From positions 4,030,001-4,094,000 of the forward strand of contig OZ176057.1 in NCBI GenBank assembly GCA_964247055.1: a DNA stretch of 64,000 nt, in the 5' to 3' direction. Of the stretch, positions 15,272-63,700 are shown piece by piece; the first letter of the stretch is position 1, and each line of letters starts with the position of its first letter. The translations under genes and the position numbers were made by a program. The notes below the pieces were generated by a model. That model did not search any database. It was not told the origin of the DNA and saw only the letters and a program-made list of their open reading frames with translations. Source of the DNA: Paragordius varius. Its lineage: Eukaryota > Animalia > Nematomorpha.

Positions 15272-18171
<2,900 letters not shown>

Positions 18172-30070: not shown

Positions 30071-33000
30071 CTACCTGGCATAACAGTTTCCATTACATGC
30101 ATCTTGTCTACAGTAAAGAGGGCCCGTGATAGGTATTTGACAGAAAGAAACTCGTTGTGCACATGCATTACAATTGGGAGTAACTGGACCGAATGTACAT
30201 ATTACGTTACCAACTGGTAAAACAGTAATGGGACCGGCCGTAGCGTTTGTAAACAACGGTGGCAATGTTGCCGCCGTCGCTTGCGTAAAAACTATGCAAA
30301 TAAAAGAATGGATAAATAGAGAGCGTGCGTTATATAACTTCTCATAAAACAAAATGGAAATACATGCTTTCAGTCAAAAAAATGCCCGAAATTACCTTTA
30401 TAATATTTTTCTTATATTTTTTCTATTATCATTTTATATGCAGTATGTTACATATTCCGAATCATAATTCTTATTGCTCAGTTGTAAAGATGCGTGTTTT
30501 ATCTCATTTTTATTTATTGATATATTTATTTATCTATTTTTTTGGTTCAATTTTTTGGTTTTATTTTTTGGTTACATTTAAATATTAGTTACTATATATT
30601 TCAGTGTTTATTTTTATCTATTATTAATCTTCTTATTTATTGTATTTTTGTTTTTTTTATGGATGTTTTTTGTAAGGCGTGAAGGCCAGACCCGGCCAGT
30701 CGCTGCACGGAGGTAGGGGCCAATAGGGATGAGGAGTGTTGTAGAGTGTGTTTTGCCAGTATAAATGTTGGTTCGTTAAAAGTAAGTTATATGATTTAGT
30801 TGAAACTATGAAGGTAAAAAAGGTAAAATTTTTGTGCATTCAGGAGACCAGATACCGTGGAAATGGTATTAAGACGTTAGAGGGTAATTATAAAATGTTT
30901 TATTCAGGTTCTACGGATGGTTACAGTGGGGTCGTTATAATAGTGTGTCCAAGATTTGCCAATCAAGTAATTGAGGTTAGACGTGCTTACAGTAGAATTA
31001 TAAGTGTCGACCTATTGTTAAATAAGAGGGTTTTTACTAACTTTAGCTATGCCCCCCCCAGATAGAATTAACTTAACCGGAGAATAAATTTTATGATTTG
31101 TTAGACGCAGAAATGACTTCATTAACAAAAGACAGAGAAATCATATTTTGTGGTGATTTAAATGTGCACATGGGACAAAATAGGAGAGGTTTTGAGCCTT
31201 AGCAGGGCGGAAAAGGATACGGGGATATAAATAAAAAAGGGCCTAGTTTATTAAGATTTGCTCAATCTTATAACGCTATAACATACCTTTTTTACTAAAA
31301 GGGATAGCCATTTAATTACCTACGAAAGTGGAAATAAGTATCGATTATAATCTGGTACCCACGAAAGTCCTTTGAGTTTAATGTGGATTGCAAAGTTAAA
31401 CCTAACCTGCAGATTAGCACCATAATTTAATTATGTGTAAATATATGACAGATATACCAATAGATGCTAAAAAGCCTAAGCTTATAGCGCCTAAGGTAAT
31501 CAAACGGGATTCCTTAAGAAACAGTAAAGAATATGTAGAAACGGTAGGCATACTAGACAGGAACAGCGACCCAGAAAGTGTTTGGTCTCAGGTGGCAAAA
31601 AAATGAGAGAGACGGGAGTTAAGGTGGAATAAAAGGTGGCATAAATCAGGTTTATAGAGAGGCATGGTTGAAAGACGAAAAAATAACTCCGCGAGAGGAA
31701 AGTAAAGCTTTTAAATTGTCGAGGTTTACCCACCATGCAGACGACAAGGAAAAATATAAAAGGATTAAGGAACTTAAAGGTTGTAATTGGTCAAAAAAGA
31801 AAAGACGGCATCAATATATACGGTAAACAGTAAGCAAGGTTTTAACAAAGTTTTTGAAATTGATTGACAAAGACACAGAAGAAATTGCCTCCTTACGCGA
31901 CCGCTATTAAAGATAAAAACGGCAAATTACTCGTTGAGAAAGCGAAAATATTGAAAAGGTGGAAAGAATATTTTCAGCACCTTGAATTGGGCGTCAGTGA
32001 AACAAATTACACCAGATTATATATATGCGATAAAGAAGAAGTCCAGGCTGGTTTAGAAGAGATGTCTATAAATAAGGCTGCAGGTCCAGACGATATTAAC
32101 ATAAATTATTCCTAAATAATGTCAGAGCAAGGTATTGAGTTTTTTGACGGATATTTTTAATAATGTAGTTACTACGGGTATGATACCAACCGAATGGAAG
32201 GAGAGTTTCACTGTTCCCATTTTCAAGGGTAAAGGAGATATTAATTATTGTAATAATTACAGAGGGATAAGATTGATGTCGCATACAATGAACTTATTTG
32301 AAAAATTAATTAGAGAAACGAATGAGAAAAATGGTTAGAGGGTAATCAATTTGGTTTTATTCCAGGAAAGTCCACCATCGATCCGATTCACTTAGTAGAA
32401 GGGCTAATCGAGAAGCATATAGAAATAAAAAAGGAGTTGCATCGTATTTCAATTGATATTGAAAAGGCGTTTGACAATATACCACGGAGTACAATATGGT
32501 GGAGCTTAAGACAAAAAAACGTTTCTGAAAGTTACATAAAGATTCTAAAAAGCATGTACGATTCACACCTAACCAAAATTAAAACACACCAGGAAGTGTC
32601 AAATCCTATTGAAATAAACAAGGGGTCTATCAAGGGTCAGCAATCAGCCCGTTACTATTTATAATATGCATTGACGAAATTTCAAAAGAAGTAGGGCAAC
32701 ATGGTGGCTGGTATTTTCTTTATGCAGACGACATAATAGTGCTGTCCGACGAGTTGCATAAATTGAAAGAATTGGCGGGTAAATGGATTGATGTGCTACG
32801 ACGATGCGGTTTAAAAGTTAATAAAAATAAAACGGAAAAATTTCGGTGGAAAAAAACAAAAAATGGAAATAGTAGAAGGGTGGGTATATTTAGGAGCGAT
32901 TTTAGCAGCAGATGGTTATTTAACGCATGATATTAATCTAAGAATTCGAAATAGTTGGGCAAATTATAAAAAGATCTAATACTTTTTGTGCGATTAAAAT

Positions 33001-35491
33001 ATTAAACTAAAAGTCAAGGGTAAGATTTGCAGTGGTGTTGTATAGCCAACAATGATGTACAACTCACAGACATCGACATTAAAGAAATTAAAAGAGAGGC
33101 ACTTCGAGGTAACTGAAATAAGAATGCTTAGAATGACAAGGTGAGGAATGTTAACATAAAAGAAAATATGGAAATCAAACCGGTAACGCAAAAGATGATG
33201 GTAAATCGTTAGGTTTGGAAGTAGAAAGAAGAGATAATAACTTAAAAAGATTGATGTATTGTGAAAGGTAAGAGGGGAAGAGGGCGCCCTAAAACGCGAT
33301 GGATAGATACAGTTAAGAGGGACATGGGAGAACTCAACCTAAAACGCGAAGACGCCATAGATAAGGTTTATGGCGATATTTACGGATATGAGCGCTCGAA
33401 AGATTGATATTATATAATGTAATTATTATATTTATTAATAAAACAAAATTATAAATGCGATAAAATTTTGCGAAAATGTTGAGGTTAGTAAATCAGTTTA
33501 GTTTATATTTACTATTTATATCTGTTTTTACTAATCACCAAAGTGAGATTTTTTAGAAAATTTTTAACTTTAAGGGATAATTTTGCGGTGGCCATATATT
33601 TAGAAAGGGCAAAAACTGGCATCGTCAAGCAGCAATTTTTGAGCAATTGTTTATATTCCTTATTTAAATTAATCATTATAGTTAATTAAAAAATTCATAT
33701 TTAGGCCTGTCATAACCTTTTGAAAAATAACAAAAAGCTGTATTTTATAAGCTTGGCATGATCAACTGCATTTTAGTTTATCGAATTTATTATATGGCTT
33801 TTAACTCTTTAAATTAAATTTAGTTGTGTGTGTACAATTTAATTTTTTAAGCTCAATCGGGTTGAACACATTATGGTAAGCACTTGTTAACTTTTATTAC
33901 TATTGTATATGTAAAAAATATTTAAAGGGATATCCTTATATTAATAGTAATTTATAACTATTTTTTTATTTATCAATCATATTTTATACAATAAAAATGG
34001 AAATTATACAGACAAAACATAAAAATTATGTAGACAAATATTTTTTCAAATGACCACACTTTTGCATACATTTTTTCCTTTTAATTTGAATTTTAAAATG
34101 AATAATTGATTATAATTAATATCCATTTCTATTTCACGCTTTTCAATTTAAAAGCATGAGAATTATATTTAAAAAAAAATGGTTGATAAAAGTATACAGC
34201 TGTTGTCGTCTGAGCACAAAAAATATTTGCCTTTATATTTTCATGGTTTTGTCGATACAATTTCAAATATGTTACCCTAGTAATTATTACGCAAAAAGAA
34301 CTTTAATTGTTTTGGCCCTATGGTTAAAATTTGTTATGATGTAAATAAAAACCTGGACTTGGACAACAACATCCTTTGGGCTCGAATGCCCGCCGGTCGC
34401 AATATGAAAAGGTGCTTACGAACGGCCCAATGCAATCGGAATCTGTGAAGCATGGCTCCGTTGATGTTGCATTGTTTGGGCATCCAATGCAGACTGGTAA
34501 AAGTAAAGATAAATATTATTTTATTATATATATATATATATATTTGAGTGGGTGGGTAAAATACATCATTTACACCTCAAATTCACCCATAATACATAAA
34601 TAATGTGTTTATATTAAGATTAACCTATATTTTTTTAATTTTTTGTTAGAAGAATTCAATTTTGTTTGAAATTTAAATAATTAATACTGAAAAAATAATA
34701 TACAATAAAGATATATTTCATATTTATGATGAGATATATTGGTCAGAAACACATAATATATTTTTAGCGTCAATTTGAATAGTTTAATTGTGTAAGGGTA
34801 AATTTAAATTTGGTATATTGTAGTACCCTATTAATCAACGTTAAGTGTGTTTATGAACGTTTAAAAAATGAAAAATTTGACCACTTATCATTCCAATCAT
34901 TCATGATCTTAATGAGTAAATTAGTACCATTTAATTATATAAAACATTTTATCAAGTAAACCCAAGTTGATTGCTTCTAATGTGTTAATATCGATAATGA
35001 ATGATAAAAATTATAGATTTTAAAAGAATTTGTATTTTTTCCATTAAATTAACGTTTAAAATCAATATATAATTAATACGTTTTGACTTATTTTCAAAAG
35101 CGCACACCTATATGTAAATATTTAAAGGTTTTCCAATATATCATCTTATGCATTAAATACAAAATTGAGCGCATAAAAATTTTTTTTATGAATAAATAAA
35201 TTTATTTGACAATTTACAATAGGCGCGGTCAAAGGGTGCCGGTTTTTTGGGGAAATTTTTACCGCTACTGGGCCAAGCTTGTGTGCCAATCATCTAATAT
35301 AATATAAATTTTGGGAAAAAATTGTAATAAATTATGAATGGTTGTTTCTTAACCAATCTATAATTTCTATAATTGAATAACTAAGCCTACTTGATCAAAC
35401 ATATATCTAAACAATATAGCTGGCTAATAAAACTTACAGTAAAAATTGAAATAACACGGAAACATAAAAATATAACGACAAATATTTTTTT
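30071..35491 (-). CDS. Cys-rich secreted family gene G1
   Basis: Minus-strand exons 35491-35438 (tentative; hydrophobic KKIFVVIFLCFRVISIFT, no in-frame ATG), 35293-35218 (MIGTQAWPSS...PFDRAY), 34493-34353 (CIGCPNNATSTEPCFTDSDC...SYCDRRAFEPKGCCCPSP), 30279-30071 (TAATLPPL...CNACAQRVSFCQ...CRQDACNGNCYAR*). Phases 0/1/1 are all compatible; homologous to G2. Confidence 0.75.
30670..33390 (+). mobile_element. RTE-clade LINE, degenerate, in the last intron of G1 (antisense to G1)
   Basis: APE motifs FLCIQETRYRG and CGDLN; RT motifs CNNYRGIRLMSHT, IDIEKAFD, LYADDI; C-terminal KRGRGRPKTRWID-like segment. Many frameshifts; ends approximate. Confidence 0.9.
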
Positions 35492-37829
35492 CTAAAATAC
35501 AATCATAATTTTTAAATCTTATTTTTTTAATTAAAGTCATTATTTTAAAATCTAAAGTATAAAATAGAGTATATTAATAGCATAATCAATAACATATTTT
35601 ATGATTGTTAACGAATGATTTTAATATGATAAATTAAAGAGATTTATAAAAGTATGGTTGTCTTAAAAAAAAGATTTGTTTTTATACTTTTACGTTTTGT
35701 CCGTATAATTTATTTTTTAATGTGAAAGCAAATTTCGACAATTTTAATTTCAAATGACAATTAACTCTTCAAAAGGGTTAGTTAGCTCTTGGGTATATTA
35801 TTAACGCATAATATTTTACAAAAATATATATAGTTTAATGCATATGTTAAAATCTGAGAATATAATTTTCGTTCAATGATTGCCTGATATACTGATTATC
35901 TGAGTTTGTAACAAAAAATCAAAATAGTTAGCGGATAATAATAATGTTTTGTCGCATCAAAATGCTTAAATAACATTTTTTGTAGAATGCTTCTGAATTG
36001 CTCCTTAAGCTATAATATATTTATTTTATTAACAAAGAGTTAATAATCATGGCATGGGGAAAAATTTACTCCCTAATACACGGTTTGAATTCTAAGATAC
36101 TCACACAACCTATTTTAATTTAACCAAATTTATGGAAAGTATACCTGGGTTCCCAGAATGACCAGGAGAATATGGAAAATACTTGAGGTCATTTGATATA
36201 TGTATATTTAATAAACAGGGTTGTTATATAAAAATGTGTGTTAAAATTAATATATGTCGATAAAAAACGAATACTTAGCTATATTAATTTTTATTAGCGC
36301 ATAATTTTATAAATATATAGATTAGGTAGTAGATTAAGGAAGCGTTTTTTTTTCATATATTTGTAACTGGATTAGGGGTGTTTTTGATTGATACTTTTTA
36401 AATATTTTTCTAGTTTTATTAATTGAATTAAAGAAAATAAGGGTGGTATTTGCGATTGACGATTGCACAGCATTTACTTCTTAACACTTAATTAGGTTAA
36501 TATGTTGATTATGTAATTTTTTAATAATCATTCTATTAGAGAAATAATAAACTTTAATGAAGGCCAGCTTCATAAATATAGCAAACTAAAATAATGAAAA
36601 TATGAATGTTAGGATTAGGTAGACACTCATGTAGCTAGCTTGTTAGGTAAAAATTATTCAAAGTTTTTACAAGATTTCTCTTATAATTACCAATTTTTAC
36701 TTAATTATTACAATTGATAAAGAAACAATTATCCTGTATTAAAGAGAAAACTTTAGAGTTATGGTGCTTTTAGTTTTAACACTTACAAATCAATGTTATT
36801 TGCACTTATTATAATAATTCCACCGTTGATAAATAAGCGTACATATGTTAAATTATATGTTTTTAAGTTATAATTTTTATAGCCAATTGGCAATGTAATT
36901 AAAAATATATTTGAATATGTTTTATCATATATAATTAAATTATATAAGCTTCGAAAGTTTTACATGCGATAATTCTATTATAATATATTGTGCAATAAAA
37001 ATTTACGCATCTTGCCCTAATAATTCTGTATTAGGAGTTTTAAATATTTCAGAGTTTAGTCAAATATGATAGAATAATCACTTTATCTAATTCAATTTCG
37101 CTTAAGATGTCTAAGTTTTACGTAAATGATTCGTAGTTTATTTGATTAAATCAATTTCTTAAAAGAGAAGCAAGCATATACAGTAAAAGACAAACAAATC
37201 AATAAAATCGGATATGATACATCAAATAAATTATAAAATTGTTTATTAAAAAGTTTATAGCTGTTCATGCCGCAAATCCTGAAACACCTAAAAATTTTGA
37301 ATAAAATAATTTCAAATTCGCCTAAAATTACTTTGATATCATAATCCAGCATATATCCATATATCTTAACTGGAAACTTCGACTCTACTGCTTTTGCTTA
37401 AAAAATACCCCTATTTAAACGTATATATAAAAAAATCTAAAATTGCTTAATTTTTTACCTGCTTTTATTTTGTAGTATATTTTGAAATATTTAGTATAAA
37501 ATTTTGCCTTTACCAAAATAATTGTGTTTTTATACTGATATATTAGCATAAAAATATTTTTCTTACTGACAACATAAAATTTAAAAACCAGAAGAATCCT
37601 TACACATCTTTTTATACAATATAGTGTTCATTACTCACCAGATTTATTATATAATATATAGAGGCCGATATTCATTATTTAATTATCTTTAGTTTATATT
37701 TTAATTTCTTTTTTACGTTACACAAAGATTAATTATAGTAATTAAAAATTCACCCAATAAATTCATTTAATTTTAGCTGAATTATAATGCAATAATATTT
37801 AAATACAATTGCATATACAAGTTTGGGGG

Positions 37830-39498
37830 AGCTATTTGAAAAAAGGGACACTAAAATGATCCATATATGTGGATTATTTCGAAACATTATTTAATAGCTA
37901 TCTCATAAGATTTTCAAAACGGTGCATTCATACTAATACTGGTGTAAAGGCCCAAATTGACGGCTGACGGAAAATACCGCTATTAATTTTTACCTTTTTA
38001 TGGGTAATATTTAAATCATTTATTAAACTCTATGACTTCAGTTTTTTGAAAATTAGCTCCAAAGCCACGCCATTTTTGTATGGCGTTTCAGTTTGAAACC
38101 GGTAGACTCCTACCCATAAGTCTATATGGAGAAGCGGTAAGTTGGATTTTTTGCCTACCATCGTCTCATGGGTCAAAAAAATACCTTAACACTAAATAAT
38201 CGTTATATGATGGCGTATTTTTGCGGCATAAAGGCACCAAATTACCGGCAAAAAAAGGCTACTTACGGGTAATATTACGAACTTTAAATGAGCCCATATG
38301 GCCTAAGTTTTAAATTAGTTGCAAAAAAACGCAATTTTATAGTGGCACATTTTTTGGTGGGTAGCTGCTTACCAAGAGGCAGGTATAAAAAAAGCGTCGG
38401 GCAAAATTTTTGTGTTTATATGAGGATATCTGGAATTATTATGTTCACATGTTCCTATAAGTTATTAAAATATTGCTTCAAAACCAAAAAATTGTTCTAT
38501 GGCGACGAATTTTTCAGGACTTTTCTTAGCGACTCATTGATATAACCTCCTATAAAATATTTGTTTTTTTTGGGTAATTAATATTTCAGGCCCTTAGACC
38601 TGATAGGTTTGATCAAAATTAACTCCTAAACAACGCAATTTTGATATGGTGGCGCAATTTTAGGCGGGTAGCTCCCTGCTCAGAGACTTATACAAAAAAG
38701 CGCTTGATTAAATTTTTTTTACGGTACTTGGAATCATGATTAATTCCATATGCTCATTAGTTTTAAATGGCCTCAAAACAAAAAATCATTCTATGTTGGC
38801 CCATTTTTCACGGCGTAAAGGGCCTATTTAACCGCTAAATTAAAACACCGCACGATCTAAATTTCTACTTTTACGGGTAATATTTAAAACACGGATTGAA
38901 CTCATATGGCCTGATAGGTTTGAATTTTAGCCCCAAAAACACGCCATATCGATATGACCGGTCAGTTTTTAGCGGGTATCTCCTTACCCAGCAGCCATCA
39001 TCAAAGAAACGCTTGATTATAATTTTTGCCGTTTAACAGGGAATACCTGGTACCAATATTGAATTTATACGGTATCATACTTTGGGAGAAAATAGATTTT
39101 AAAAATTATTTTTGTGGACTTATTTTTTTTAAAAACAATGGCACTTTACGGGAGGAGCGGGTAAAAAGAGTGCCTAAATTAGAAAAGCGAGCCGAACATG
39201 TTCGGCCCAAACAAAAATAAGTTAAAAAAAATCATATTTTAAATCGAATGGTCCATCACGTTTTCCGGAAAATTGTCTCAAAGACACTGTGGACTTGTGT
39301 TAAAAAAAAACCGTTTTTCACACCGGGTGGGCCCGAACTGGGGGCCTAATTCAAAAAAAGGACGAAGCTATTGTCGGGGCATTCATTAATGATTATATTT
39401 TTTCGACATTTGGATTTGAATGGGTCTACCGGCTTTCCGGAAACAGATCACAAAGCCACCACTTTCCATTTTTATAAATGTATATATATTATATATAT
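37830..39498 (-). mobile_element. Helitron family H, long copy with ~4 internal ~300-bp tandem units
   Basis: Both flanking segments match 556-1070. Internal units led by (AA)CTCATATGGCCT...ACGCAATTT at ~38025, 38290, 38590, 38900. No Rep/helicase ORF. Confidence 0.7.
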
Positions 39499-40064: not shown

Positions 40065-43000
40065 TTATCTGACAGTAAGGGGCGTATCATTTAACATACC
40101 AGACAGCTGGGTACAAAACATAGGTACGGTACATCTGCTATCAGCACATAACCGAAAAGTGCATTGTAAACAATTATCGATGCGACAATATATGGGTCCT
40201 TGTTGAATGTTGTACGTACAATTACCCGCGAATGCTGGGCAAGGGCGACACGGGTTTACGGGCAGGGTCCCTATGATACCACATGAAGTATATTCTGTAA
40301 ATTGCACAGGAAATATCGATGATACCGTGCTAGTTGTTTCAATACTCGGGAGACCTACTGTCGTTGGGGCTGTAAAAACTAAAATTAAACGTATAAATAA
40401 ATATTGTATTGTTTAAGGTATTGTTATACCTTATATGTTGCATAGTCTGCCGAATTATGGGGCTTATTTGCTACATTAAAAAGATTATATTTTTTGGATA
40501 AAGATATAGATGAGATTATATAGGTCCTTAAAAATAGAAATAAAGCTCCATGGTATAAATGTAAAACCAAATTACGCCAAACAGCTGATTATTGGTTTAA
40601 TGGTAAATTTTTTTAAAAAATATTTTTTCACATAGAGTTTAAACCAGTGATACTCAAACCGCGGCCCGCGGGCCGCATGCGGCCCTAAGAATGCTTTAAA
40701 ATTGCCCTATGACCATTACTTAATTATTTTTTTTATTGATGAATTTTTAAAATACCCTAAACAAATTTTCGCTTACTTTAATATTATTTATTTTCTTTAG
40801 ATTTAATTTTGGTAATTTTTATTTTTTACCGAATTTGAAAAATGTAGAAAAATTTCCCTACATTAAAATGATTTCAAAATTTTGGCACACGTTGTTTCTG
40901 TTTCTGTATTCTATTATCTTTTCAATTTTGAAATTTTTAATGCATTCCTTTTTTGTATTTAAGCAAGCCTTTCACCCAAACTTGCATATACATATTCTTT
41001 TCATTGCTATCCTGCATCATTTTTTATATCATTTCCATATATTTTTCAAATCAACTTCATAAAATTTCGCCCTGTTTTTTATAGCATAATTCAAATTATA
41101 TTCCTATTTTTTTAAAAAAAATTTACATAATATTTAAACATAAATTCAATGGATGACGTTTAATGCTAAAAAACGTAAATTATCCGATGAAAATCACTCC
41201 TTTAAAAAGAATGGGAGAATACTTTGTCGTTCCAAATAAAAATGGTGTTACCAGCCAGGACAACCTAATTATAAAAATACAACATTGAAACACATATTAC
41301 AATCCATTCTCAATTACCAAAAAATTATGAGGAAAAAAACGAAAAATATAAAAGGATTAAGGAACTATACCAGAAAGAAAAATCTATTATGTCCATAGCT
41401 TTCCCCTAGGAAAAAGGTGTAACATTAGCTTCTTATAAAATTTGCTATATTTTAGGAAATACATGAAACCGTTTACTGATTCCCAACTGATAAAAGAATG
41501 TCTAATAAATGGTTGCAGTTTTTTATTTGATAAATTCCATAAAAAAGATCAAATCATGAGACAATTAAGAAACTTCAACTTTCTGATTCAACATGTGTTC
41601 GACGCTTTGAAGATATGTCCAATTATATTTTTAACAATACATTATTGGCTCTGAAAAACGAATATTTTAGTATTTCTATTTCTAGCCCTGATATTAGTTC
41701 AACACCTCAATGTGCGCTCTTTGTGAGATTTTGCAACGACAACATAATCAACGAGGAATATTTAATATATTTACCAATTAATAATACCACGAAAAGTGGT
41801 TTTCTCAAAATAATTATCACTTATTTCGATAATAATGGATTATCTATGAAAATATTGGTTTCGATCTGCACAGATGGCTGTCCCTCTATTGGAATAAACA
41901 AATTTATTCCTTTTTTGAAAAACAGATATAATTTGCAAAATATTTTATCCTTTCACTGCTTTATTCATCAGCAAAACTTGATTTCGCGTGTAAAAGATGA
42001 ATCACTCAATTCAGTAATTAAAACGGTTGTGTATATAGTTAACCCCCTCCGTGGCAGATAATTCAACCGCCGTAAATTTTAAAGCCTTCTGAAAGATATC
42101 CACAGTGAGTTTGACAATATTCTTCTGTAAACCGCTAAGATAGCTAAGCCTTAGAAAAGTATTAAAGAGATTTTTTGATTTAAAGCATGAATTCTATTAT
42201 TTATGAAGGAGAACCGAAAGTCGTGGAAATTAATAGTGATAAATGGTGAGTTTATTAGCCTACCTTTGTGACATTTTATAAACTTAGTTTTTCAATACAA
42301 TGCTTCAAGGGACCAAAATAATAAAAATTTGCTAATCAAATATTTGCCTTTGAATAAAACAAGATATCATAAATAAACACTCCTATAATTTCCGACACCT
42401 AAAACGATTCTTGAATAAAACATGGAACTTACCGCGGAGATTAATTTAATAATAGACAATCATTTAGCATTTTTATCTAATAAGATGAAATTCTTCAAGA
42501 ATTAGAAATATTAATAATTGCTTAAAACTCGTTAAAAATCCATGGCATATGGATATACCAATAATAAGCAAATTAGGAATTTCGGTTTTGATCAGGCTAT
42601 CATAGAAGAATTCGTAGATTTTAAAAATGATTCCAATTTGGAGGCTAAATTCAAGGAGAATCATAGAGAAGAAAGATATGATTTGGCAAGATGTGCCAAA
42701 TAAATACGAAAATATAAAAAAATGTGCTCAAGTTATCCTAACTGTTTTTCCCTCAACTTATACACGTGGTCGGCATATTCAAAAATGAAGTATGCCAAGA
42801 ATTCATACAGAAATCGATTAACCGATGATCACATGGACGACGTATTAAGATTGGCTTGTCATGAGGCAAAACCAAATTTAATGGTGCAAAACGAGTTTTT
42901 AGCTGGATTTACATGCACAAAAAATTCATTGTGGTGATTTAGAGTATAAATATGTGCATATGTGTCAAATAGCTATGGAATATATTCGATTATAAGGTTC

Positions 43001-44094
43001 ATGCCCTCGAAAAAAAAATATATTTTATTTGGCCCGTCAAATTTTTTTAGTGAGTACCACTGGTTTAAACATAAAATACGTTAAACATTTAATGAACCTC
43101 AGCGGTTATCGGGGTTTAAATCCAACATGCTAAATTGCGGTAAAAGCCGAAAATTTATGAGTGCAATTTAACATTGAAATTCTTTAAAGAGATTGGCCAA
43201 TGAATATTTTTTAGGATATTTGACTAAACAATTATTATTTTATTTGTTATGTAAAACAGCTTTTTTAATTAACTAAAATCTTTTTTTTGCAAATTTCAAA
43301 TTTTTTCGCATTTAAGGATGGCTGAACTATGGGCTAAAATGGTGAGGCTTGCATTGGGTTCACAGTGAACTACACTGTGAGTGGAGAAATTAACCTTTAA
43401 CAATCTATTCAGTCGACTTTTTAATATTGAATAAAATAGGATCAAAACTATATGATAACCGTCCTCCTTTCAGTGAGTAGAATCATTGATAGTCAGTCAA
43501 TAATATATAACAAATATTCTTTTAAAATAAAGGGATAGTAAGTTTATATACATGGTGAGGCACAACAACACCCAAATAGTTCAGAAGCCCTTCTGTCACA
43601 ATAAGAATCCGTGGTTGCTTGGAGACAATCAAAATCTGAAGAACATGGGTCTGAAGACGTTGAATTAAACGGACAATCCTTGCAAACTATAAATTTTTAT
43701 TGTCAGTTAAGAATAGAGTAAAACATTAAATAAATATTAAGTTCGAGCTGTCTTTTCTTCAAAAAATCGATAAATTATAATTATTTCCTAACTTACTTAT
43801 ATTATTTAATTAAATACAACTTAAATATAATTATGTAATTAAATTAACCAAACTTACAATAAGCTCTTTCGAATGAGGCAAAATTTTTGCGAGAAATTCC
43901 ACCCTTTTTTGACGAAGGATAAGGTAGAATTTGGACAATCTATATTTATATATGAAAAATTCCTAAAATTTTTGGTGATAAATACATATTTTTAAGGATA
44001 TAATAAAGTGTAAATTTAGTTTGGGATTTTAAAATTAGTGTTGGAAATCTACCGCTAAGTGGAATACAATAATTGCCAGGATGATAATGCTCAT
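40065..44094 (-). CDS. Cys-rich secreted family gene G2 (187 aa)
   Basis: Minus-strand exons 44094-44053 (MSIIILAIIVFHLA, signal-like), 43939-43858 (...SFERAY), 43686-43552 (CKDCPFNSTSSDPCSSDFDC...SYCDRRASELFGCCCASP), 40369-40065 (PTTVGLPSIETTST... plus a 10-Cys domain). All GT-AG; total 564 nt in frame. Confidence 0.85.
40645..43062 (+). mobile_element. hAT transposon (Buster/SPIN-type), degenerate, in intron 3 of G2
   Basis: TIR CAGTG(A/G)TACTCA with a perfect 8-bp TSD GTTTAAAC; GCGGCCCGCGGGCCGC subterminal palindrome. Transposase fragments KPFTDSQLIKECL, SICTDGCPS, FHCFIHQQNL, NRLTDDHMDDVLRL. Confidence 0.92.
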
Positions 44095-44663: not shown

Positions 44664-46210
44664 ATGAGTCTCATGCCTATGGTATTACTGCTGGGTATCG
44701 GCATTCAATTTTTACAGGTTTTTTTACAAATTTCTTTAAAAATTTGAGACCGCCAAGTTTTTTTTATTAGCTTTAACTATTTATTATTTGTAAACGAAAT
44801 TTTTATCCCCATTATGTAAAGGTATCAAGCGCCCCATCATATCAAAACTTGTCCACAAATGAACATATGATCGTATCTAGACATAAGCGTTATGCCAAAA
44901 GTTACGATACCTCCATTCTCTTGGGTAAATAAATTTATTCAGCGAAAAAGCTTTAAGAAAAATATATCATATTTTATATATATTGTTTACATCTTTTTTT
45001 CCTCCACACATTTTTTTGGTCAGAATGTCGGGGTTGTCCAAACACAGCGGCCTTGCCAAACACAATATGTGGCGTTAAAGGGGGTATTATGTGTCCCTCA
45101 GGGTACTCATGCGATATCCAAGTTGGTCGGAAAAAATCTAAAGATGATTATGGTTGTTGCTGTCCTATATTTACAACAGGTAAGAATAAAAAATATATAA
45201 TTAATGAATATATTCGTATCTTAAAAATTTTCGAAAAAAACACGCTATTGAAACTGTATCCACGGGAAGCGTTTTGAAGAAATTAATTTTATAGTTCTCA
45301 ATTAGTTAACTCTATTTATTATTTTTGTTTTATAGTCATTAAAGTAAACTTTATGTTTTGTAGTTATCATACCTTAAAACCCAATAAATGTCGTCCGAAG
45401 TTATTATGGGAAAAATATTTAGCAGATAAATTGACTTCGGTTTCGATTTGGAATCTCGGACTAGCTTTTTATACCCAGGGTTTTGTAAATAGAGTCAATG
45501 TTGAATAGTTTAATCTTAATTAGTGTTTTTGCAAATATGGTAAATGTTTTTATCCATTGCTCTGGTTATAAAAATCCAAAATTAGGACTTCCTTTATTGA
45601 TTAATTTTTATTAGAGTAAAAATGGATTTTATGACCTTTAGGCTTCTGGTTATGATAAGTCATATATGCCACTATATAACTTTTGCAAAGTAATCCTGAT
45701 GGTGCTAATATATTATGCTGAATTAATCAATAATTTTAATAATGAAAAAAATATATAGGGTGCTTACTTAAATTCTTATAACCTTTTAGCTGATTAAAAC
45801 TGATATTTTATACATATATAATATATATATGCAGTGGGACGTTTTTCTTTAAAACATTAACCGCAATAAATTGGACATATTATAATTTTTTTGTAGCTGT
45901 CACTGGAGAAACGACCATTATCATGACAACTAGTAACGTTACCACGGCAACCACCGCAAGCACAGCAAGTACCCCAACGTTACCCCCTCTCGCTGTTAAT
46001 CTTTTACCGCCTGTATTGTGTCCCGCAGGTCAGACTACGGTATGTAGTGCGAATCCTTGCTTACAAATTCGATACTGTTTACCCTTTTCAAGCAGTTACA
46101 GTTGTGTTCCTCGCCAATGTTTTGGTTTTTGTGAAGCCGAAGTCATAGCTGATGACACAGCGACCCCAGCTGTCTGCTCCTACATACAGGCCCCGTTACC
46201 CATTGGTTAA
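44664..46210 (+). CDS. Cys-rich secreted family gene G3 (208 aa)
   Basis: Exons 44664-44717 (MSLMPMVLLLGIGIQFLQ), 44822-44924 (VSSAP...SRHKRYAKSYDTSILL), 45024-45179 (ECRGCPN...CPSGYSCD...DDYGCCCPIFTT), 45897-46210 (Thr-rich linker plus 8-Cys domain CSANPC...CVPRQCFGFC). Total 627 nt in frame. The exon-2 acceptor (aaag) is weak. Confidence 0.85.
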
Positions 46211-50500: not shown

Positions 50501-50660
50501 GACGTAGTCTCACCGATAATTAATAATTTGAATAAAAGGAAATGGAGATAAAAAATAATAAAAAACATAATTTATAAAAGAATGTCTTTAATTATTTTCT
50601 ACCGGTTTTTGCATAGGCTTAAATATTGTTACTTGAATACGACCATATTTACACTGTCCT

Positions 50661-53999: not shown

Positions 54000-55812
54000 T
54001 TTAACTGAAGTATGGTGTCTTAGGTTTTTTGAAAATTAGCTCCAAAACGCCAATTTTATATGGCGTCTCAGTTATAAACCGGTAGACCCCTACCCATAGA
54101 CCTATATGGAAAAAGCGCTGAGTTAAATTCTTTGTCTTTATAGGGCAAATATTTGGAATCATCTTTGATACCATCGTCTCATGTGTTATTCTAAAAAATA
54201 CCTTAACTCTAAATAATCATTATATGAAGACCTATTTTTAGGGGAAAAAAGGCCTTAACGGCTGATTAAAAAACGCCTGACCATTTTCACCTAGTTACTG
54301 GTAATATTCTAAGCTTTTAATGAACTCATATGGCTTCATAAATATTCTGTAAATTAGCTCCAAAACAACGCAATTTCTATATAATGGCGCAGTTTTTGGG
54401 TAGCTTATCCAGGGACAGGTATAAAAATAATTTTTTTGCTTTAATATGGGCATTATCTGGAATTTCATGGATTACATATGTTTTTGTTAGACACATGGGT
54501 TTTCTGAAATTCGGCTCCAAAGGCATGCTGTATCGCTATAATCGCAGTTTTATGCGGGTAGCCCCATAACCAGGGGCGAAACAAAAAAACGCTCGATTAA
54601 CATTTTTGCCTTAATTCGAATAATACCTTGAATCATGATTGATTCCATATCCTCTCCTATTATTTTTCAAAAATTGCCTAGGAATCAAAAGGTTATTCTA
54701 TGGTCGCGTTTCAGAGAAAGGGTCTAATTAAGGGGTAATCTAATATAATCGCTCTATTTAAATATTTGCCTTTTTACGCGTAATGTTTCAAGCCCTTATT
54801 AAACTCATATGGCCTGATAAATTATGATGCCTCCAAATTCACGCTGTATCGATATAGTGGCGGTGCTGTTGACGGGTAGCCCCCTACCCAAAGGCCAATA
54901 AAAAAAAGACGTTCGAAAAAATTTGCTTTTAAGGGGAATGCCCAATTATCATTCATTCCATATGTTTTAATAATTTTTGAAAGAATGACTTCACATTTTT
55001 TAGGGCGTAAAGCCCTTATTATTGGCTATTTAAAACACCGCTCAAATAAATTTGTCTTTTAACGGGTTAAATTTTAGGCACTTATTTAACTTATATGGCC
55101 TGACATAAGTTTTCATAAAATTAACTCCTAAACAACGCAATTTTGATATGGTGGCGCAGTTTTAGGCGGTTAGCTCCCTACCCAGATGCTGATACAAAAA
55201 AGTTGATTAAAATTTTGGCCCTTTTACGGAAAATATCTGGAATCATGATTCATATGCTCCCACTAATTTTTGGAAAAATTGCCTCCAAACTAAAAATCAC
55301 TCCATGATGGCGCATTTTCGCGTGAAGGGCCTAATTAACAGCTAATTTCAATAAAACCACACGATCTAATTTTTGCCTTGTTACGGGTAATATTTTAAGC
55401 AGCTATTTAACTCATATGGCCTATAGGTTTTCCTAAATTTAGCCCCAAAGGCAAGCTATTTTAATATGACGGGTGAGTTTTTATGTATCTCTCTACTCAG
55501 CAGCTATCATCAGGGAAACGCTTGACAATTTTTGCCTTTCAACAGGGAATAGTGGAATCCTTTTTGAATTTTTACGGGGCGATCCGACTTTGTTCGGCGC
55601 AATCGATAAGTAAAAAATCATATTTTAAATCAAATGGTCCAACACGTTTTCGGGAAAATTGCCTCAAAGACACGATTTTTGTGGACTTCTGTTAAAAAAC
55701 CCTTTTACACGAGGTGGGCCAGAACAAGGGATAATGATTTTTTTTAGTATAAATGTAAAAGGGTCTACCGGTTTTCCAGAAACAGATTACAAAACCATCA
55801 CTTTCCATTTTA
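54000..55812 (-). mobile_element. Helitron family H copy with ~5 internal ~300-bp units
   Basis: Units at ~54010, 54320, 54820, 55085, 55410 match those in 37830-39498. The right part matches 800-1070. Confidence 0.7.
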
Positions 55813-55964
55813 ATGTTTGATTATCAAATGTAATCATTCTTATAACATGTTAAAAGACATATTATTTTTTATTATAGTGACTTCCTATAATTTTTTATTA
55901 ACATAAATTCAAACTTTATATTATCTAAAATATTTCACCTATGCAGTTTTATTTCTAACATGTG

Positions 55965-58900
55965 ATGAACATTCGACATATTGACTTGCTAAATTTAACG
56001 CTTCATTTTTCACTATCTAATGCTAATTTACATATTGCGGTATATCCCAGAGCTCAATTTTGTAAATAACCCACAGTTTTGTAAATTATTTTAGTTAAAA
56101 TTTTATTAAACATTGAATGTTGAAAGCTTTTTGTATTTACATTTTTTTAACTACATACATTTATTTTCCTCTCGCATAGCGATTTAACATATAAAAAAAT
56201 GGCGGCGAAAAAGTTTGAGATGAGGATTTTAGATTTATAGATTTTTTAAATTTTTTGTATAATGCTCTTAAAAGTCTAACGCATTTTATTAATTCAGCTT
56301 AAAACTTCAAATCAGGGGTGTTCAACATAAATGGCTTCCACATAATCTTAGTAAAATTGAAATTTCTTAAACAATTTATAATTCTGCTTAAATCACATGC
56401 AAGAATAAAAATTGTTATATTGTGTCGGAATTTTCTGATAAAATGAAAAATTTATTGTATGATATATGTAATTTATTTTCTTTTTAAAAGATAACAGACG
56501 TCCCCAACCTAAACGTGCTAGCTTTTACCCAATTCAAACAATATTCCAGGTATTATATCATTCATGATATTTAACAAATTTTATAAATATAAGGTAGTGG
56601 TTTGATATATAGATGACTAAATATAAGTATATTAAAGACTTGCCATCTTAAACACTTAAGGTCACTTCAGTATAGCATATCTAGCATATTTCTTATTTTG
56701 ATTTTAGCTTATGAGTACCAAATCATAAAGCATTAATTTATTTGCCTAGCCGGAAATATATTCTTTATAAATATTAAATATTAGATTGGCTTAATAAAAT
56801 TTTTGAAAGTTTAAATAAACTTAACTCATATTCTCAACCTATTTGAACAGCGATTAAAAAAATATTTTGTTTAATTCTAGATATTAGTACACAATATTTT
56901 GAATTTTTATTGATTAAATTACAAACAATTTTAGAACCAATTATGGCCATCAACCCATGCTCCATAGGTATCAACAAGTCCTCTTCAATCAGAACCGACA
57001 TTACAAACCTAGGATATTTTTTCAACGATCTGACATGATACCAATTTATTATGATAATCGTATGCCGCAGGCTCATTATCCCTCTTCCAATATAATTAAA
57101 CAGCAAAGATGGAATCCCCGTTTTCCAAGTTACTACCAAAGAGATCATTTGCAAATGGCTCAGCAACAAAATATGGAAACATCATATCCAGAAACAGGAT
57201 ATCATTATCAAAATCCTTCTGCCCGATACACCAACATGCATGAAATGGTTGAATCAAATAATGTTGGAGATGATTTAACTCAAATGAATGCACATGAAAA
57301 CAGTGCTCCAGCCCCTAGACTAATCTTTGATGAATATGGTTTTATTGATGAAAGTCAACAAAATGAGGAATCTCGATCCAACAATTACCCCTATGTAACC
57401 GAGCCAGAAAACTATAATACTTATAACTATGTACCAAACAACAATTACAGACCCATGAACATGAATAACAGGGAAAACAGATTAGTAATGAACTCCTTAC
57501 AGCAAGTCACACGAAGGAGACATCCCATATTACAAATGCTCTATAATGCATTCCTACAAAATAAACAGCGCTATGATAGAAACAATGAACAAATAAATTC
57601 CCACAACAATGAAGATATGATGCAAAAGAATCAGGTCCAAGCCAATAAAATTTCGGTTTCAAGCGGTTACGACCCTCGTAAATCCTATGATGACACCATA
57701 AATATAGGTTTATATACAAAATATTATGTATATATTTTTGATTTAGTTAATATATGTTAAAAGATATTGATATATAATATTGAATATACAAGAAATGTTT
57801 ATGATTAATATACCAAATCCACAAATTAAAAATTAAAAGAGAAGCTTTTGAGCACAAATCTCATTATTTTATACGAAATTAATGTGATTTAAATGCAATT
57901 AATAATTTACTCAAAATTTAACACGAAAACGCATTTTTATAATGGGATATTACTAAAGGCGTGATGGTAAGTAGGTAGGGCGCCGGACTCTTACACTGCC
58001 TGCCAGAGATCGAACACCCAAACTATGCAATTTTTTCATCAACACTGTCAGCCCTGGGAAGGGTTTAAAGCCTTGACAAGTCCGGATAAAATTAATAAAA
58101 AAAGATAAAAGAGACTCTAAACTGTATATAATGGGAGATTACTAATGTGATTAATCATTTTTTAGATATTTACACTTAATGCCCTTTCAACATTTTGCAT
58201 GCGATGACATTATTTATTGGAGATTAATAAAATTAAGAAATAAATTGGCGGTGAGAACTTTTGAGATAAACATTTTTTGCAATTTAACATTTTATTAAAA
58301 AAAATACTATGATGCGTCTAAAAGGTTAAATAAGGCATATTTTTATATAATACTAAATTTTTTAGATATTTTAATTATATATGGCTTGGTATAAAAACTA
58401 CGACGAAAGTTCATGAAATGTTAAAAATCAAAATGACTATCAACTGCTTGTTTCATTTTTTTTCTCCTTGACACTCGTAGATATTAACCCAAATTTAAGA
58501 CGCTACTATAGTATAATATGTCAAAGTTTGTCAAAATATTGGTGTTTTTTCATCTTAAAATCTTAGATGGAGGAATCGATTAGCTTTCAGAAACTGAAAA
58601 ATTTGGTTCATTGCATATAAAAAAGATAAACTTAAAAAGGTTTTAAATGTAGCCAGCTATGTTATGATGTATTTTAGCGATAATGCGTAGTAAACGCCTT
58701 CTATAAAATTAAAAATTGAAACACAAATATACTATTTATGTATTTTACTAGTTTAGCTATAATTCATTAATGAAACACATGTATTCATTACACGATGGCT
58801 TGTCAAAAGCAGCTGTTAACCTACCGTAAAAAATCATTTCTTTGCGTTATTTTCCTTTGTGAACCCCAAACATTTTTGAGTTTGGATTTGTGTTTCTCTT

Positions 58901-59974
58901 TAACAATACTTTTTGCATTTTAAATTTTATATAAATTTCTACACTTATATACTAATATTCAGTCAAAGGCAACACTTTTCAACCAAATCAACATTTATTC
59001 AACCAAAGGCAACATATTTTCATTCAAACGCAACACTTTTCAAGCAAATGCAACATTTTTTCATTAGTCTTTGCTTAAAAAATATTGCATTTGCTTAGAA
59101 AATTTGCGTTTGCTTAAAAAAATGTTTTGTTTAATTAAGAAAATGTCGCGTTTGACTGAAAAATGGTATACTAATATAAACAGAATGTCGTGGATGTGCT
59201 AACAGTGTAGCTATACCAAATACTGTATGTGGAGGAAAGGGAATAATGTGCCCAGCATCTTATTATTGCGACATCAATACCAATATCAAGCATCCTGACC
59301 AGTATGGTTGTTGCTGTCCGTATCCTACAACAGGTATAATTTACACATTAAAACTAAATTTCAGAGTTGAATATGTAGTATAAAAAAAACTTTTGAGAAG
59401 TCTTTTTGGTGGTATAGAATATTATTATTCAGTTTGGTTTATTTTATTTACACCGTGGGAATAAATAATATTTGCAAATTTGTGATTGTTTCAATTGGCT
59501 AAATAATTTTAAATATAAATACTTGCAAAGATATTAAAGATTTACCTAAATAATTAAGTCATCTTTAGTGCTCTTGCACACATTCCAAAACAACATAAAT
59601 TAATTACGTTCTTTAGCTATCTGATTAATATCACAAGCGAAAATTTACACCAAATTTCAAAATTTTCATTTTTCAAATATTATTCAAAGTATTTTTTTAA
59701 CATATTAAAAATGGAGTGATACATTAATTAAATAATATACATATAGGCCATGCTATATTTTGGACTTAAAATTTGACTCTTTATAAAATTTCATATATTT
59801 TGAGAGTTGTCTTTTAAAATCACTACATTTAACAGTGGGATGTGTATTTTAGCGGATTTTTATAGATTAATTGATTAATTATTATATACGATTAAGCTCC
59901 AAGATTTATTGATATAAATCATTAAGAAAGCGCCTTAAAAAATGCCTTAAAAATTTTTTTAGTTAATATCAATG

Positions 59975-60006
<32 letters not shown>

Positions 60007-60395
60007 AAATAACTTTAGTTGGACCCAGTGTGACAATTTCAGCAATAACAACAACTGTAAATAGCACAGCAGTTACAAATACTTCTTTAACAACTGTGGC
60101 GCCATTCCCTCGCTTCCCGAGAAGGATAACGAATGCTAGAAGGGAACTTCCCCAAGACTGTGAAGTGTTCAATGTCAATTGCAGAGTGAACCTTTGTGAT
60201 TCCATCGTGTATGAGATACTCTAATTTTTTTAATTTTTTTTAAATACATTAGAAGTTGATAATAAAGGCGACTTGATATAGTAGATAAGGCACCGGCTCT
60301 TACACTGTGTCTTTGGTGTGCCAGAATTCGTATTCCGAAATTACGAAATTTTTTCTACACTGTCAATTAGCCCAGGACCTGATAATACAATTTAT

Positions 60396-60429
<34 letters not shown>

Positions 60430-62874
60430 TGCAAGTTTTGTATGAATTATGTCCATATAGCATTTGGATACAGTAAAGAGATTCTTGGTTAAAAAATCTT
60501 TTTTGCCCTTTACAACATTAATAATTCTCATTGCTGTATCAACTTTCTTTTAACAAATTAAGAAATAAAACAATGTTTGGAAAACTGTATTATAAAATTA
60601 ACTATGAAATTTTCATTAAATATGGGCTTCATAAATTCATTTTAATTAAAAATATTTATATCGTTTGGGACCTCATCACATGATATTTTTATATAATATT
60701 CGGCGCAATCGAAAATAAGTAAACAAAAATCATATTTGAAATTGAATGGTCCAACAAGTTCTCCAAAAAATTGACTTAACCCATTTTTCACACGGGGTGG
60801 GCCCAAACTGGGGACCTAATTCCAAAAAAGGGCGAAGCTATTGTCGGGGCATTCATTAATGATTAAATTTTTTCGATGTTTGGATTTGAATGGCTTCACC
60901 GGTTTTCCGGAAACAGATCACAAAGTTATATGAAAAATCAGTTTTTAGCGGGTAGCTCCTTACCCAGCAGCTATCATCAAATAAACGGTGGACTAAAATT
61001 TTTGCCTTTTAACAGGGAATACGTGGAATCTTTATTGAATTTTTACGGTCTCATACCTAGGGCGAAAAATCGATTTAAAAAATTATTTTTGTGGACTTTG
61101 TTCTTTGAAAAAAATGGCATTTTACGGGGGGAGCGGGTAAAAAGAGGGCCTAAATCAAAAATGTGACTCGACTATGTTCGGCGCAATCGAAAATAAGTAA
61201 ACAAAAATCATATTTGAAATTGAATGGTCCAACGCGTTCTCCGGAAAATTGTCTCAAAAGCACGATTTTGTGGACTTGTGTTTTTTAAAAAAACCCGTTT
61301 TTCATACGGGGTGGGCCCGAACTGGGGGCCTAATTCAAAAAAAGGGCGAAGCTATTGTCGGGAGATTTATTAATGATTATATTTTTTCGTATTTGGATTT
61401 GATTGGGTCTACCGGTTTTCCTGTACCAGATCACAAAGCATTTTCCATTTTTATAAATATATAGATTAGTTTACATTTTGTGGCAAATATTAGGCCCGGG
61501 ATTAAAATTAATATGTACTATTGGAAATAAATATTAAACATTATATATCGATTTATTCACATAAAAGCCGTTTTTTCATAATTCCCCTTTATACTCCAAT
61601 ATACATATATGTATATATAAACACTGTGTGCAAAACAATTTTTAACAAATTTTTTTTTCATGAGATAGCTTACGACCAGTGAATTCATTTGCCGCAAAAA
61701 TTATTATTTGTGACAACCTAGTTTTTGAAATATTGAGAGAAAAGCGAAATCGGGCAAAAAGTGATAATTGATAAAATTTGAGTTATTATGGTTTATTATT
61801 ATTTCCGGATATATTTTCTATATAAATAGCCTAAAATCATATAGTTAGGGTTTCTATAAATTTCAGCTCAAAAGATGGCGTTTTTCTTTTAACACCACAA
61901 AACATTTTTTAATAAAACTATATTAAAATAATTTTCATTAATTATTTGCTACCTAAACTCACTATTAAAATTTTATTCATATTTTATTCAGTATAAAATA
62001 CTTGTATATAAAATAAAACAAAAATTTTATATTTTATTTTAGCATTTTTTGTCTATCTGGTTTATGAGTGTATAAAAAATTTATACTGTTTTATTTTGGA
62101 ATTTTAGATGAGAGGTAATTTTAAAGTATATAATTTTGCAAAATAGGATTTAAAATAATGGAAAATTAATCAACGATCCGTACAAATCACAATACAAATA
62201 TTAAAGACTTGTTACAAGAATTTGTAAGGATCGTTGGTTAATAATCCACTAATTTAAATCCTATTTTTCATTATTTATATATTTTATAAATCGCATTCAT
62301 GTAAGATTCCAAATAAAACAGTTTAATTTTTTAAACACTCACAAACCAGATGACAAAAAATGTATAAAAAACAATATTTTTTGGTTTTATTTTAATATAT
62401 AAGTTTTTTACTGAATAAATATGGGTGTTAAGATTTTAATAGTGAGTTTAGCTAGTAAATATATATTAATATATTTTCATTAAATATTTTTTGTCTTTTA
62501 AGAGTGATAAAAGAAAAACGCCATCTTTTGACCTAAAATTTTATATATAGAAACCCAAACTATATGATTAGGCTATATATATTAAAAATATAATAATAAA
62601 CGATAAAATTTCAGATTTTATCATTATTTTTTGAATTATCCTTAATTATCTCTAATTTTCACTTTTGCCCGATTTCGATTTTCTCTCAATATTTCAAAAA
62701 CTAGGTTGTCAAATAATTTTTTTACGGCAAATGAATACGCATAAGCTATCTCATGAAAAAAATTTTTTTTTTACCCTGTTTTTTGTGCACAGTGTATATA
62801 TATAAATATGTATATAAATAAATATGTCTATATATAGTAAAATTTTATATTATACATACAAAATGTAAAACAGC

Positions 62875-62910
<36 letters not shown>

Positions 62911-63700
62911 CGGATAAAAAAGAAACTCAATAAAAAATATTTCAAAATCATAATTATTTGGTTAATGTAGAAATTAAACTTTAATTAAGTATGGTTCCTA
63001 AAAATATTTGTCGCTCGGAAAGTTCATTAAATGTCTGAAAAAATATAAATTTATTCACAGTTTATGTTCACAATTTCAATTTTTTTATATTTTATATGTA
63101 TAATAAAATCGCTTTGGCGTAGTTAACTGTAAATATAATCGAGTAAGGGTAGCCAAAATTAATCTTACTTTTGTACCACCTATAAATTTCAATAATATCT
63201 CCCACTAAATTTATTATTTTAAATCTAAGTTTACCAAAAATCTCTCTGTTTTATAGATAATACGCATTGTGAAAATTATTATAAAGAGCCAAATTTTAAA
63301 ATAGTTTATTTTTTTTAACCCAATCTACATACATAGTTCTATGGACTACCTCCAATTTTTATACGGTAACGAGAGCTTTTGTAGCCCATTTTGGTATTCT
63401 TTTTCAAAAATGTAACTAATAACAATGAAAAATGTCATACATGGTATTATATTTGAATAATCTTTTATCCATTCACACTATCGTTATGGCTTAGATTAGT
63501 GCTAGTTACTGTAAAAAATAATTCGTATAAGTAATTATCAAATCAAATCAAATCAAATGCTCCTTTTTTATCACAGATGTTACCCAGAACCACCTCCTGA
63601 CGCTATGTTAGTATGCCTAGTTCGAGGTTGTTCGCACTGTGATGTTGTCGTTAGCAATGATGGAATTCCACTAACCTGCTTTTCAACTCTCCTACCTTAA
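55965..63700 (+). CDS. Cys-rich secreted family gene G4 with a long Q/N/Y-rich pro-region (>431 aa)
   Basis: Exon 1 is tentative (55965-56039 or 56020-56061). Then 56491-56549 (tentative), 56935-57707 (Q/N/Y-rich, ends KSYDDTINI, cf. KSYDTSILL in G3), 59184-59333 (ECRGCANS...CPASYYCD...DQYGCCCPYPTT), 60019-60208 (Thr linker, CRVNLCDSIV), 63577-63700 (CYPEP...CLVRGCSHC...LTCFSTLLP*). Phases 0/2/1/1/2 are all compatible. Confidence 0.75.
57958..58090 (+). mobile_element. Possible tRNA-derived SINE (second copy ~60266-60385)
   Basis: GGCGTGATGGTAAGTAGG (A-box-like)...GATCGAACAC (B-box-like). The segment GG(G)CRCCGG(A)CTCTTACACTG...CACTGTCA is shared with 60266-60385. Confidence 0.4.
58948..59169. 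mobile_element. Small MITE with ~20-bp subrepeats, ending ~15 nt before a G4 acceptor
   Basis: TTCAGTCAAAGGCAACACTTTT is inverted relative to AAAATGTCGCGTTTGACTGAA. Same family as 29938-30067. Confidence 0.55.
60695..61465 (-). mobile_element. Helitron family H copy (5' part, with internal duplication), intronic in G4
   Basis: Ends ...ATATAGA|T (minus strand A|TC). ~60700-60930 duplicates ~61175-61430. Confidence 0.7.
61622..62794. mobile_element. ~1.17-kb foldback element, Tc1/mariner-like termini, intronic in G4
   Basis: CACTGTGTGCAAAA...TTTTGTGCACAGTG|TA. The arms are inverted over ~550 bp around a short spacer at ~62185-62225. Confidence 0.85.

Follow-up and report, generated by a model that had tools for sequence, protein, structure and literature searches.

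A cluster of four predicted genes for Lustrin-like cysteine-rich secreted proteins in the hairworm Paragordius varius

Four two-domain genes in one contig

The stretch of DNA analysed here, called the window, comprises 64,000 nucleotides of the genome of the hairworm Paragordius varius (Nematomorpha; assembly GCA_964247055.1, contig OZ176057.1, positions 4,030,001 to 4,094,000 of the forward strand). It is AT-rich animal DNA (GC content 0.29) that carries many transposon remnants, and it contains four predicted genes, named G1 to G4, for cysteine-rich proteins of two domains. A sequence-only reading of the window had pointed to four exons, each in phase 1/1 and each encoding eight Cys, and all four held up at their coordinates (Table 1). 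The exons, which encode domain 1, are bounded by AG and GT, and the residues CD and GCCC are invariant among them. The 8-Cys motif occurs four times in the window and was not found in any of 100 dinucleotide-block shuffles. Its spacing had to be amended in detail: the second interval is x9/10 rather than x9/11, the next two are x5-7 and x5-10, and the end reads CD-x7-12-GCCC. A profile built from the four exons found no fifth copy of domain 1 in the window. Behind each domain-1 exon, and in the same frame, follow a linker rich in Thr, Ser and Pro (38-53% T+S+P across G1-G4) and a second Cys domain. The frames are open in all four genes, as had been proposed, and the N-glycosylation sequons that had been pointed out are present. 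Database searches and fold models used single exons; translation of the joined proteins served only to verify the frame.

The exons stand out in composition from the DNA around them. Their GC content is 0.35-0.55 versus 0.15-0.28 in the flanks, which places the exons 10-29 points higher. The proportion of synonymous differences (pS) is saturated, at 0.78 between G3 and G4 and at 0.87 between G1 and G2, while the proportion of nonsynonymous differences (pN) is 0.26 in both pairs. Therefore, G1-G4 are old intact paralogs under purifying selection and not recent copies or pseudogenes.

Gene structures

The cluster spans 34 kb and extends at the G1 and G4 ends past the exons that the sequence-only reading had listed. 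G1 starts at 36192 and has its probable end at 29563, and the probable start of G4 lies before 56498. All splice junctions in the four models were predicted from the sequence. G2 and G3 have four exons each, with intron phases 0, 1 and 1, and are arranged head to head with 570 nt from ATG to ATG. Hydrophobic leaders had been claimed for these two genes and were found in both; a hydrophobic first exon was additionally found for G1. The window holds five strong phase-0 hydrophobic first-exon candidates, three of which belong to G1, G2 and G3. A different 5' end of G1, MKYIFIVYYFF (34721), was rejected as too short and with a GC content of only 0.12, and a mini-exon in G2 (40470-40430) was rejected for breaking the frame.

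The two outer genes have less certain ends. The segment 29563..29635 is rather likely to be a fifth exon of G1 that would give a 10-Cys domain 2. When it is included, the frame stays open and encodes 169 amino acids (aa) with 18 Cys, and domain 2 has 10 Cys, spaced 4,4 as in G2. The Cys pattern of exon 5 is given by two of the 2471 acceptors in the window, the pattern having been picked after it was seen. In G4, a Gln/Asn/Tyr-rich open reading frame (ORF) of 257 codons ending at 57707 is probably the N-terminal exon because its donor is the top non-self match to the end of G3 exon 2 among 2372 donors (narrowly, at 19 vs 17), and because one relative from the nematomorph Gordionus (P0003/P0007) likewise has ~230 residues ahead of domain 1. 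No convincing signal exon of G4 was found in the window; the candidates sit in repeats or in a long interspersed nuclear element (LINE). An intron within the first half of domain 2 occurs in G4 only.

Mobile elements lie within and between these genes. G2 intron 3 houses a hAT-type DNA transposon (40637-43070), which has terminal inverted repeats of 12 bp (CAGTG...), lies between the copies of an 8-bp target duplication (GTTTAAAC) and retains a transposase-like ORF remnant at 41615-42061. G1 intron 3 contains a decayed LINE on the plus strand (30700-33400; reverse-transcriptase match at 32326-32589, E=1e-13). A second LINE remnant, on the minus strand, is located between G3 and G4 (50670-52700; RVT_1 E=6e-17). 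The last intron of G4 includes nested inverted repeats (61599-62815) that resemble a miniature inverted-repeat transposable element or a foldback element.

Table 1. Predicted exons of G1-G4, in window coordinates.
Gene	Exon and content	Position	Strand	Basis or remark
G1	Exon 1, signal peptide, phase-0 donor	36145..36192	-	Newly found; 1 of 5 strong phase-0 hydrophobic first-exon candidates in window
G1	Exon 2, end of signal peptide, phase 0 to 1	35263..35293	-	Newly found; GC 0.55, AG/GT, in-frame join, phase order as in G2/G3
G1	Exon 3, domain 1, 8 Cys, spacing 2,9,5,10,9,0,0	34353..34493	-	Motif, AG/GT
G1	Exon 4, Thr/Ala/Pro linker and domain 2	30071..30291	-	7 Cys up to TAG at 30071; would end at 30075 with exon 5
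G1	Exon 5, probable	29563..29635	-	Phase-2 intron of 439 nt; tentative
G2	Exon 1, signal peptide	44053..44094	-	Hydrophobic first exon
G2	Exon 2, short basic pro-segment, phase 0 to 1	43858..43939	-	In-frame model
G2	Exon 3, domain 1, spacing 2,9,5,8,9,0,0	43552..43686	-	Motif, AG/GT
G2	Exon 4, linker and 10-Cys domain 2	40065..40378	-	Completes 190-aa protein
G3	Exon 1, signal peptide	44664..44717	+	Hydrophobic first exon
G3	Exon 2, pro-segment with RHKR furin-type site ahead of domain 1	44822..44924	+	In-frame model
G3	Exon 3, domain 1, spacing 2,10,7,5,14,0,0, Lustrin-like core	45024..45179	+	PF14625 E=7e-4; identity to Gordionus 56-64%
G3	Exon 4, Thr-rich linker and 8-Cys domain 2	45897..46210	+	Completes 208-aa protein; 36% identity to Gordionus P0001
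G4	Small upstream exon, tentative, phase 1 to 2	56498..56549	+	GC 0.42, AG/GT, frame compatible with next exon
G4	Long Gln/Asn/Tyr-rich N-terminal exon, 257 codons, probable	56935..57707	+	Link newly proposed; phase-1 donor
G4	Domain-1 exon, spacing 2,10,6,5,13,0,0	59184..59333	+	Motif; identity to Gordionus 52-56%
G4	Linker and first three Cys of domain 2, phase-2 donor	60019..60208	+	In-frame model
G4	Last exon, other five Cys of domain 2 and stop	63577..63700	+	Profile positions 30-49, 28/1000 Cys-fixed shuffles

Relatives in Gordionus and membership of the family

A domain-1 profile of the four exons was searched against 1.84 billion representative proteins. At E<=0.001 it matched three proteins, all uncharacterised and all from Gordionus. 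These relatives in Gordionus sp. m RMFG-2023 are LOC135929293 (XP_065321875/6), CAK9298394-6 and LOC135931430 (XP_065324600, CAK9294201). The sequence-only reading had proposed a lineage-restricted secreted two-domain family, and this agrees both with the finding of three Gordionus genes as the only database relatives and with the hydrophobic first exons of G1, G2 and G3. It had also called the family hidden, a description that does not suit the Gordionus members, which are already annotated publicly as uncharacterised proteins.

The full-length Gordionus proteins are laid out as G3 is. They consist of domain 1 (spacing 2,10,7,5,14/15,0,0), a Thr/Ser-rich linker of 47-54 residues and an 8-Cys domain 2 with the spacing 9,2,5,8/9,4,3,13/14, compared to 7,4,5,8,4,3,14 in G3; both short and long N-terminal variants occur. 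The Gordionus sp. m RMFG-2023 genome (26.9% GC) has an RNA-seq-guided annotation (10.1101/2023.06.26.546503), and the same layout in that annotation therefore provides independent support for the joined G3-type architecture. The layout of LOC135929293 (both domains, the linker and their order) is found in full in G3, in G4 by domain 1 and the Cys count, and weakly in G1 and G2. Conservation of domain 1 is given in Table 1. The last exon of G3 shares 24-36% identity with the Gordionus proteins, the match to P0001 having E=3e-11 in a small database. A homologous-protein search was blank for the last exon of G3, for the extended frame and for the domain-2 alignment, a result whose meaning is limited by the length window of that search.

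Do G1 and G2 belong to the same family as G3 and G4? The two pairs are alike in the 8-Cys layout with its CD and GCCC, in the exon phases (0-1-1), in the arrangement of linker and second domain, and in their tandem position, and by these features they very probably form one family. In addition, the last exon of G1 matches Gordionus P0007 (E=2e-4), and the score of G1 domain 2 was reached by 40 of 1000 shuffles in which the Cys were kept fixed. That G1 and G2 are instead a separate family, similar to G3 and G4 in Cys pattern only, appears improbable. This alternative draws on a tree in which G1 and G2 form a deep second branch, split from G3 and G4 with support of 99/98, and on marginal scores of their domain 1 against a G3/G4/Gordionus profile (reached by 68 and 47 of 1000 Cys-fixed shuffles, respectively). 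Domain 2 of G2 gave no match in the Cys-fixed comparison (216/1000), neither gene has a Lustrin match, and Gordionus yielded no protein of the G1/G2 type.

Domain 1 and its likeness to Lustrin

The sequence-only reading had held that domain 1 resembles Lustrin/WR1-type repeats only loosely and that its triple-Cys end could not be assigned to a named family. However, domain 1 of G3 and G4 spans most of the model of the Pfam family Lustrin_cystein (PF14625). Residues 4-47 of G3 domain 1 align with positions 2-46 of the 46 in this family (E=7e-4, 20.3 bits), the match of G4 is partial (E=0.12), and four of seven aligned members match at E<=1. A search with language-model features placed a Lustrin cluster third, with a low score of 0.76, and serves as a lead only. 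The predicted fold also ranks a Lustrin-containing protein first, as the top Atlas match to an AlphaFold model of domain 1 was a nematode protein with Kunitz and Lustrin domains (template modelling score 0.60, 43 aligned, residues 1-51). Among solved structures the neighbours of the model were knottin-like folds, all of them weak (Z<=3.5): RaCI1 (Z 3.5, root-mean-square deviation 2.7, 39 aligned), colipase, evasin-3 and tachystatin. Foldseek returned nothing at E<=0.001 and IGFBP N-domains only at non-significant E-values, and sequence searches of the PDB found no credible relative. Taken together, the family and fold searches gave a weak Lustrin likeness for domain 1 and no fold match for domain 2.

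The proteins may be classed as Lustrin-type Cys-rich secreted proteins, rather than as formal members of PF14625. The triple-Cys end of domain 1 most plausibly represents the Lustrin CC with one more Cys, balanced by one extra Cys on the N-terminal side. The disulfides would be those of the six paired Lustrin Cys and a C1-C8 clasp. No relationship between domains 1 and 2 could be detected.

Domain 2 and an unnamed 8-Cys module

Domain 2 of G3, G4 and the Gordionus proteins has eight Cys, as does a module that contains the sequence NYCGGC; G1 and G2 carry 7-10 Cys in this domain. The NYCGGC search pattern was used as a lead only, and all scoring was done on fetched sequences. A scan with this pattern found 120 or more metagenome contigs or loci (L002-L121) that carry an 8-Cys module with the core C-x2-NYCGGC-x-A. 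The one viral match was rejected, as it lay in the wrong frame of a chaperonin-like gene and arose by chance. In the metagenome proteins, the neighbours of the module are Kazal, Kunitz, antistasin, pacifastin, collagen, hydrolase, PETase-like and type IX secretion domains. Pfam names no module over the NYCGGC region in 10 carrier proteins. Widespread in secreted proteins and without a Pfam model, this module merits a family entry of its own.

Evidence for a relation to domain 2 comes from a profile of 28 non-redundant copies of the module. It scored G3 domain 2 at 11.9 bits, a value that none of 1000 Cys-fixed shuffles reached, with the module chosen after G3 had been seen. The same profile was marginal for Gordionus P0004 (27/1000) and not significant for the remaining hairworm copies, and a profile-profile comparison (hhalign) of domain 2 with the module gave a non-significant E=0.13. 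None of the hairworm copies has an intact NYCGGC core: the sequence is RQCFGFC in G3 and RNCNYVC in Gordionus. Domain 2 of G3 is likely a divergent copy of the module. Fold searches with domain 2 found no match, with a poor model.

Possible functions

What might these proteins do? A signal peptide would direct them to secretion, and a variable pro- or N-terminal segment could optionally be trimmed by a convertase (a furin-type site is present in G3). The Lustrin-like disulfide knot with its extra Cys pair would act as a first binding head and the 8-10-Cys module as a second, and the O-glycosylatable Thr/Ser/Pro spacer would hold the two protease-resistant heads apart. Pfam found no catalytic or known inhibitor domain in the exons or in the Gordionus homologs. 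A signal peptide, two disulfide-rich heads and a glycosylated spacer, together with this lack of a catalytic or inhibitor domain, suggest a non-enzymatic bivalent binder. On the most likely reading, for which the chances seem roughly balanced, G1-G4 would be two-headed binders or linkers in the extracellular matrix of the worm itself (cuticle/precuticle, egg string or cyst). Secretion and glycosylation are predictions, as is the function.

A role in the matrix is favoured by the low copy number, by the presence of Lustrin domains in known matrices, and by how well domain 1 is conserved in the two hairworm genomes compared. Lustrin domains occur in lustrin A of the abalone shell matrix (as cited in PMC13388995) and in the cuticle protein MLT-11 of C. 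elegans (PMC13181417). The conservation of domain 1, at 56-64%, would fit a partner in the worm's own matrix better than an arms-race effector.

Several observations weigh against this reading. The best Lustrin score, 20.3 bits in G3, is below the Pfam gathering cut-off of 27, and Pfam gave no PF14625 match for G1, G2 or the full-length Gordionus proteins. The structure models have low confidence, with predicted local distance difference test (pLDDT) values of 64 for domain 1 and 56 for domain 2. A clear signal peptide is absent in the Gordionus models P0001 and P0004, and domain 2 is absent in P0003. Furthermore, deletion of the Lustrin domains from MLT-11 had no overt effect (PMC13181417); they are dispensable there, and the Lustrin domain is thus left without a demonstrated activity. 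Finally, the fast divergence of domain 2 and of the N-terminal segments is also compatible with a host-facing role.

In such a role, which seems unlikely here, the knots would be secreted in the parasitic stage and bind immune or signalling proteins of the arthropod host. Tick evasins and RaCI are secreted binders of vertebrate host proteins, and the nearest solved folds to the domain-1 model include RaCI1 and evasin-3 beside colipase and tachystatin. However, the Z of 3.5 for RaCI1 is far under the meaningful range of the tool, and Foldseek did not support it at its threshold. G1-G4 are small, disulfide-rich, lineage-restricted and tandemly duplicated, and hairworms parasitise arthropods (10.1101/2024.06.11.598342). 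On the other hand, the known copies are just 3-4 per genome, domain 1 is strongly conserved and no recent expansion was seen; a mucin-like spacer would be typical rather of matrix proteins. A more specific version is a long shot: the parasitic juvenile would secrete two-headed knots into the arthropod host, where the clasped Lustrin knot and a module without a known fold would bind immune or signalling proteins. If true, this would be the first activity for Lustrin-type domains and the first defined secreted effector family of the phylum.

It is also quite unlikely that the proteins are double-headed inhibitors of moulting proteases or of host digestive or melanisation proteases. Lustrin domains adjoin Kunitz domains in nematode proteins, and the domain-2-like module adjoins Kazal, Kunitz, antistasin and pacifastin domains in metagenome proteins, but such neighbours do not make the Lustrin or 8-Cys modules inhibitory. 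None of the exons or Gordionus homologs matched a Kunitz, Kazal, WAP, TIL, antistasin or pacifastin profile at E<=10, and nothing was found in support of the protease-inhibitor option that the sequence-only reading had listed. Least convincing, and very improbable, is a soluble ligand or growth-factor binder (an IGFBP-N or colipase-like knot) in the worm's own signalling: domain 1 begins with CxxC and IGFBP N-domains recur among the weak structural neighbours (Atlas rows 5, 9 and 10; rows 2, 5, 10 and 11 of the other structure search), but all these matches are non-significant, the GCGCCxxC signature is absent and there is no IGFBP match in Pfam.

Other elements of the window

A dispersed repeat family is represented at 725-1073, 38962-39487, 47137-47543, 54545-55814 and 60696-61438, with internal units of ~480-510 nt and copies that are 72-85% identical. 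An array of ubiquitin units occupies 15314-18171, and each unit is apparently a separate exon. Two long low-complexity ORFs of 305 and 416 aa, 71 nt apart on the plus strand (25149-27388), have no Pfam match and are probably exons of an unannotated gene. A fragmented Ty3/Gypsy-like gag-pol element lies at 5975-10476 (RVT_1 at 7082-7489), and a transposase-like fragment at 22409-22759 has a weak DUF4371 match.

Significance and comparison with known systems

Secreted proteins of hairworms have been poorly described so far. For an invertebrate genome it is nothing unusual that divergent paralogs for Cys-rich secreted proteins lie in a tandem cluster and are missed by an ORF track. The family was not described in the literature searched, where no mention of nematomorphs together with lustrin was found either; it appears to be undescribed and so far confined to hairworms, and both of its domains trace weakly to modules known elsewhere. 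Whether as matrix binders or otherwise, G1-G4 represent small single-copy versions of two modules that lack a demonstrated activity and are otherwise found inside large mosaic proteins. This small single-copy form would make them convenient for testing the structure and binding of both modules, the Lustrin-type knot as well as the unnamed 8-Cys one.

How do G1-G4 compare with known systems? Their Gordionus relatives are dispersed over three large contigs (31.8, 54.6 and 93.7 Mb), whereas G1-G4 are clustered within 34 kb. Tick RaCI1 and evasin-3, colipase and the IGFBP N-domain weakly resemble the predicted disulfide-stapled beta-hairpin and share no sequence signature with it. The NYCGGC module has a spacing of ~5-8,4,4-5,7,4,2,12-14, compared to 7,4,5,8,4,3,14 in G3 and 6,4,4,11,4,2,12 in G4. 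Unlike Lustrin proteins, each of G1-G4 has one copy of domain 1, with no repeats and no Kunitz domain, and this domain has an extra Cys at each end relative to Lustrin_cystein (the CxxC start and the CCC end). With Lustrin_cystein of abalone lustrin A and of nematode Kunitz-Lustrin proteins such as MLT-11, domain 1 shares a six-Cys core ending in CC, a CPxGYxC turn and a secreted context.

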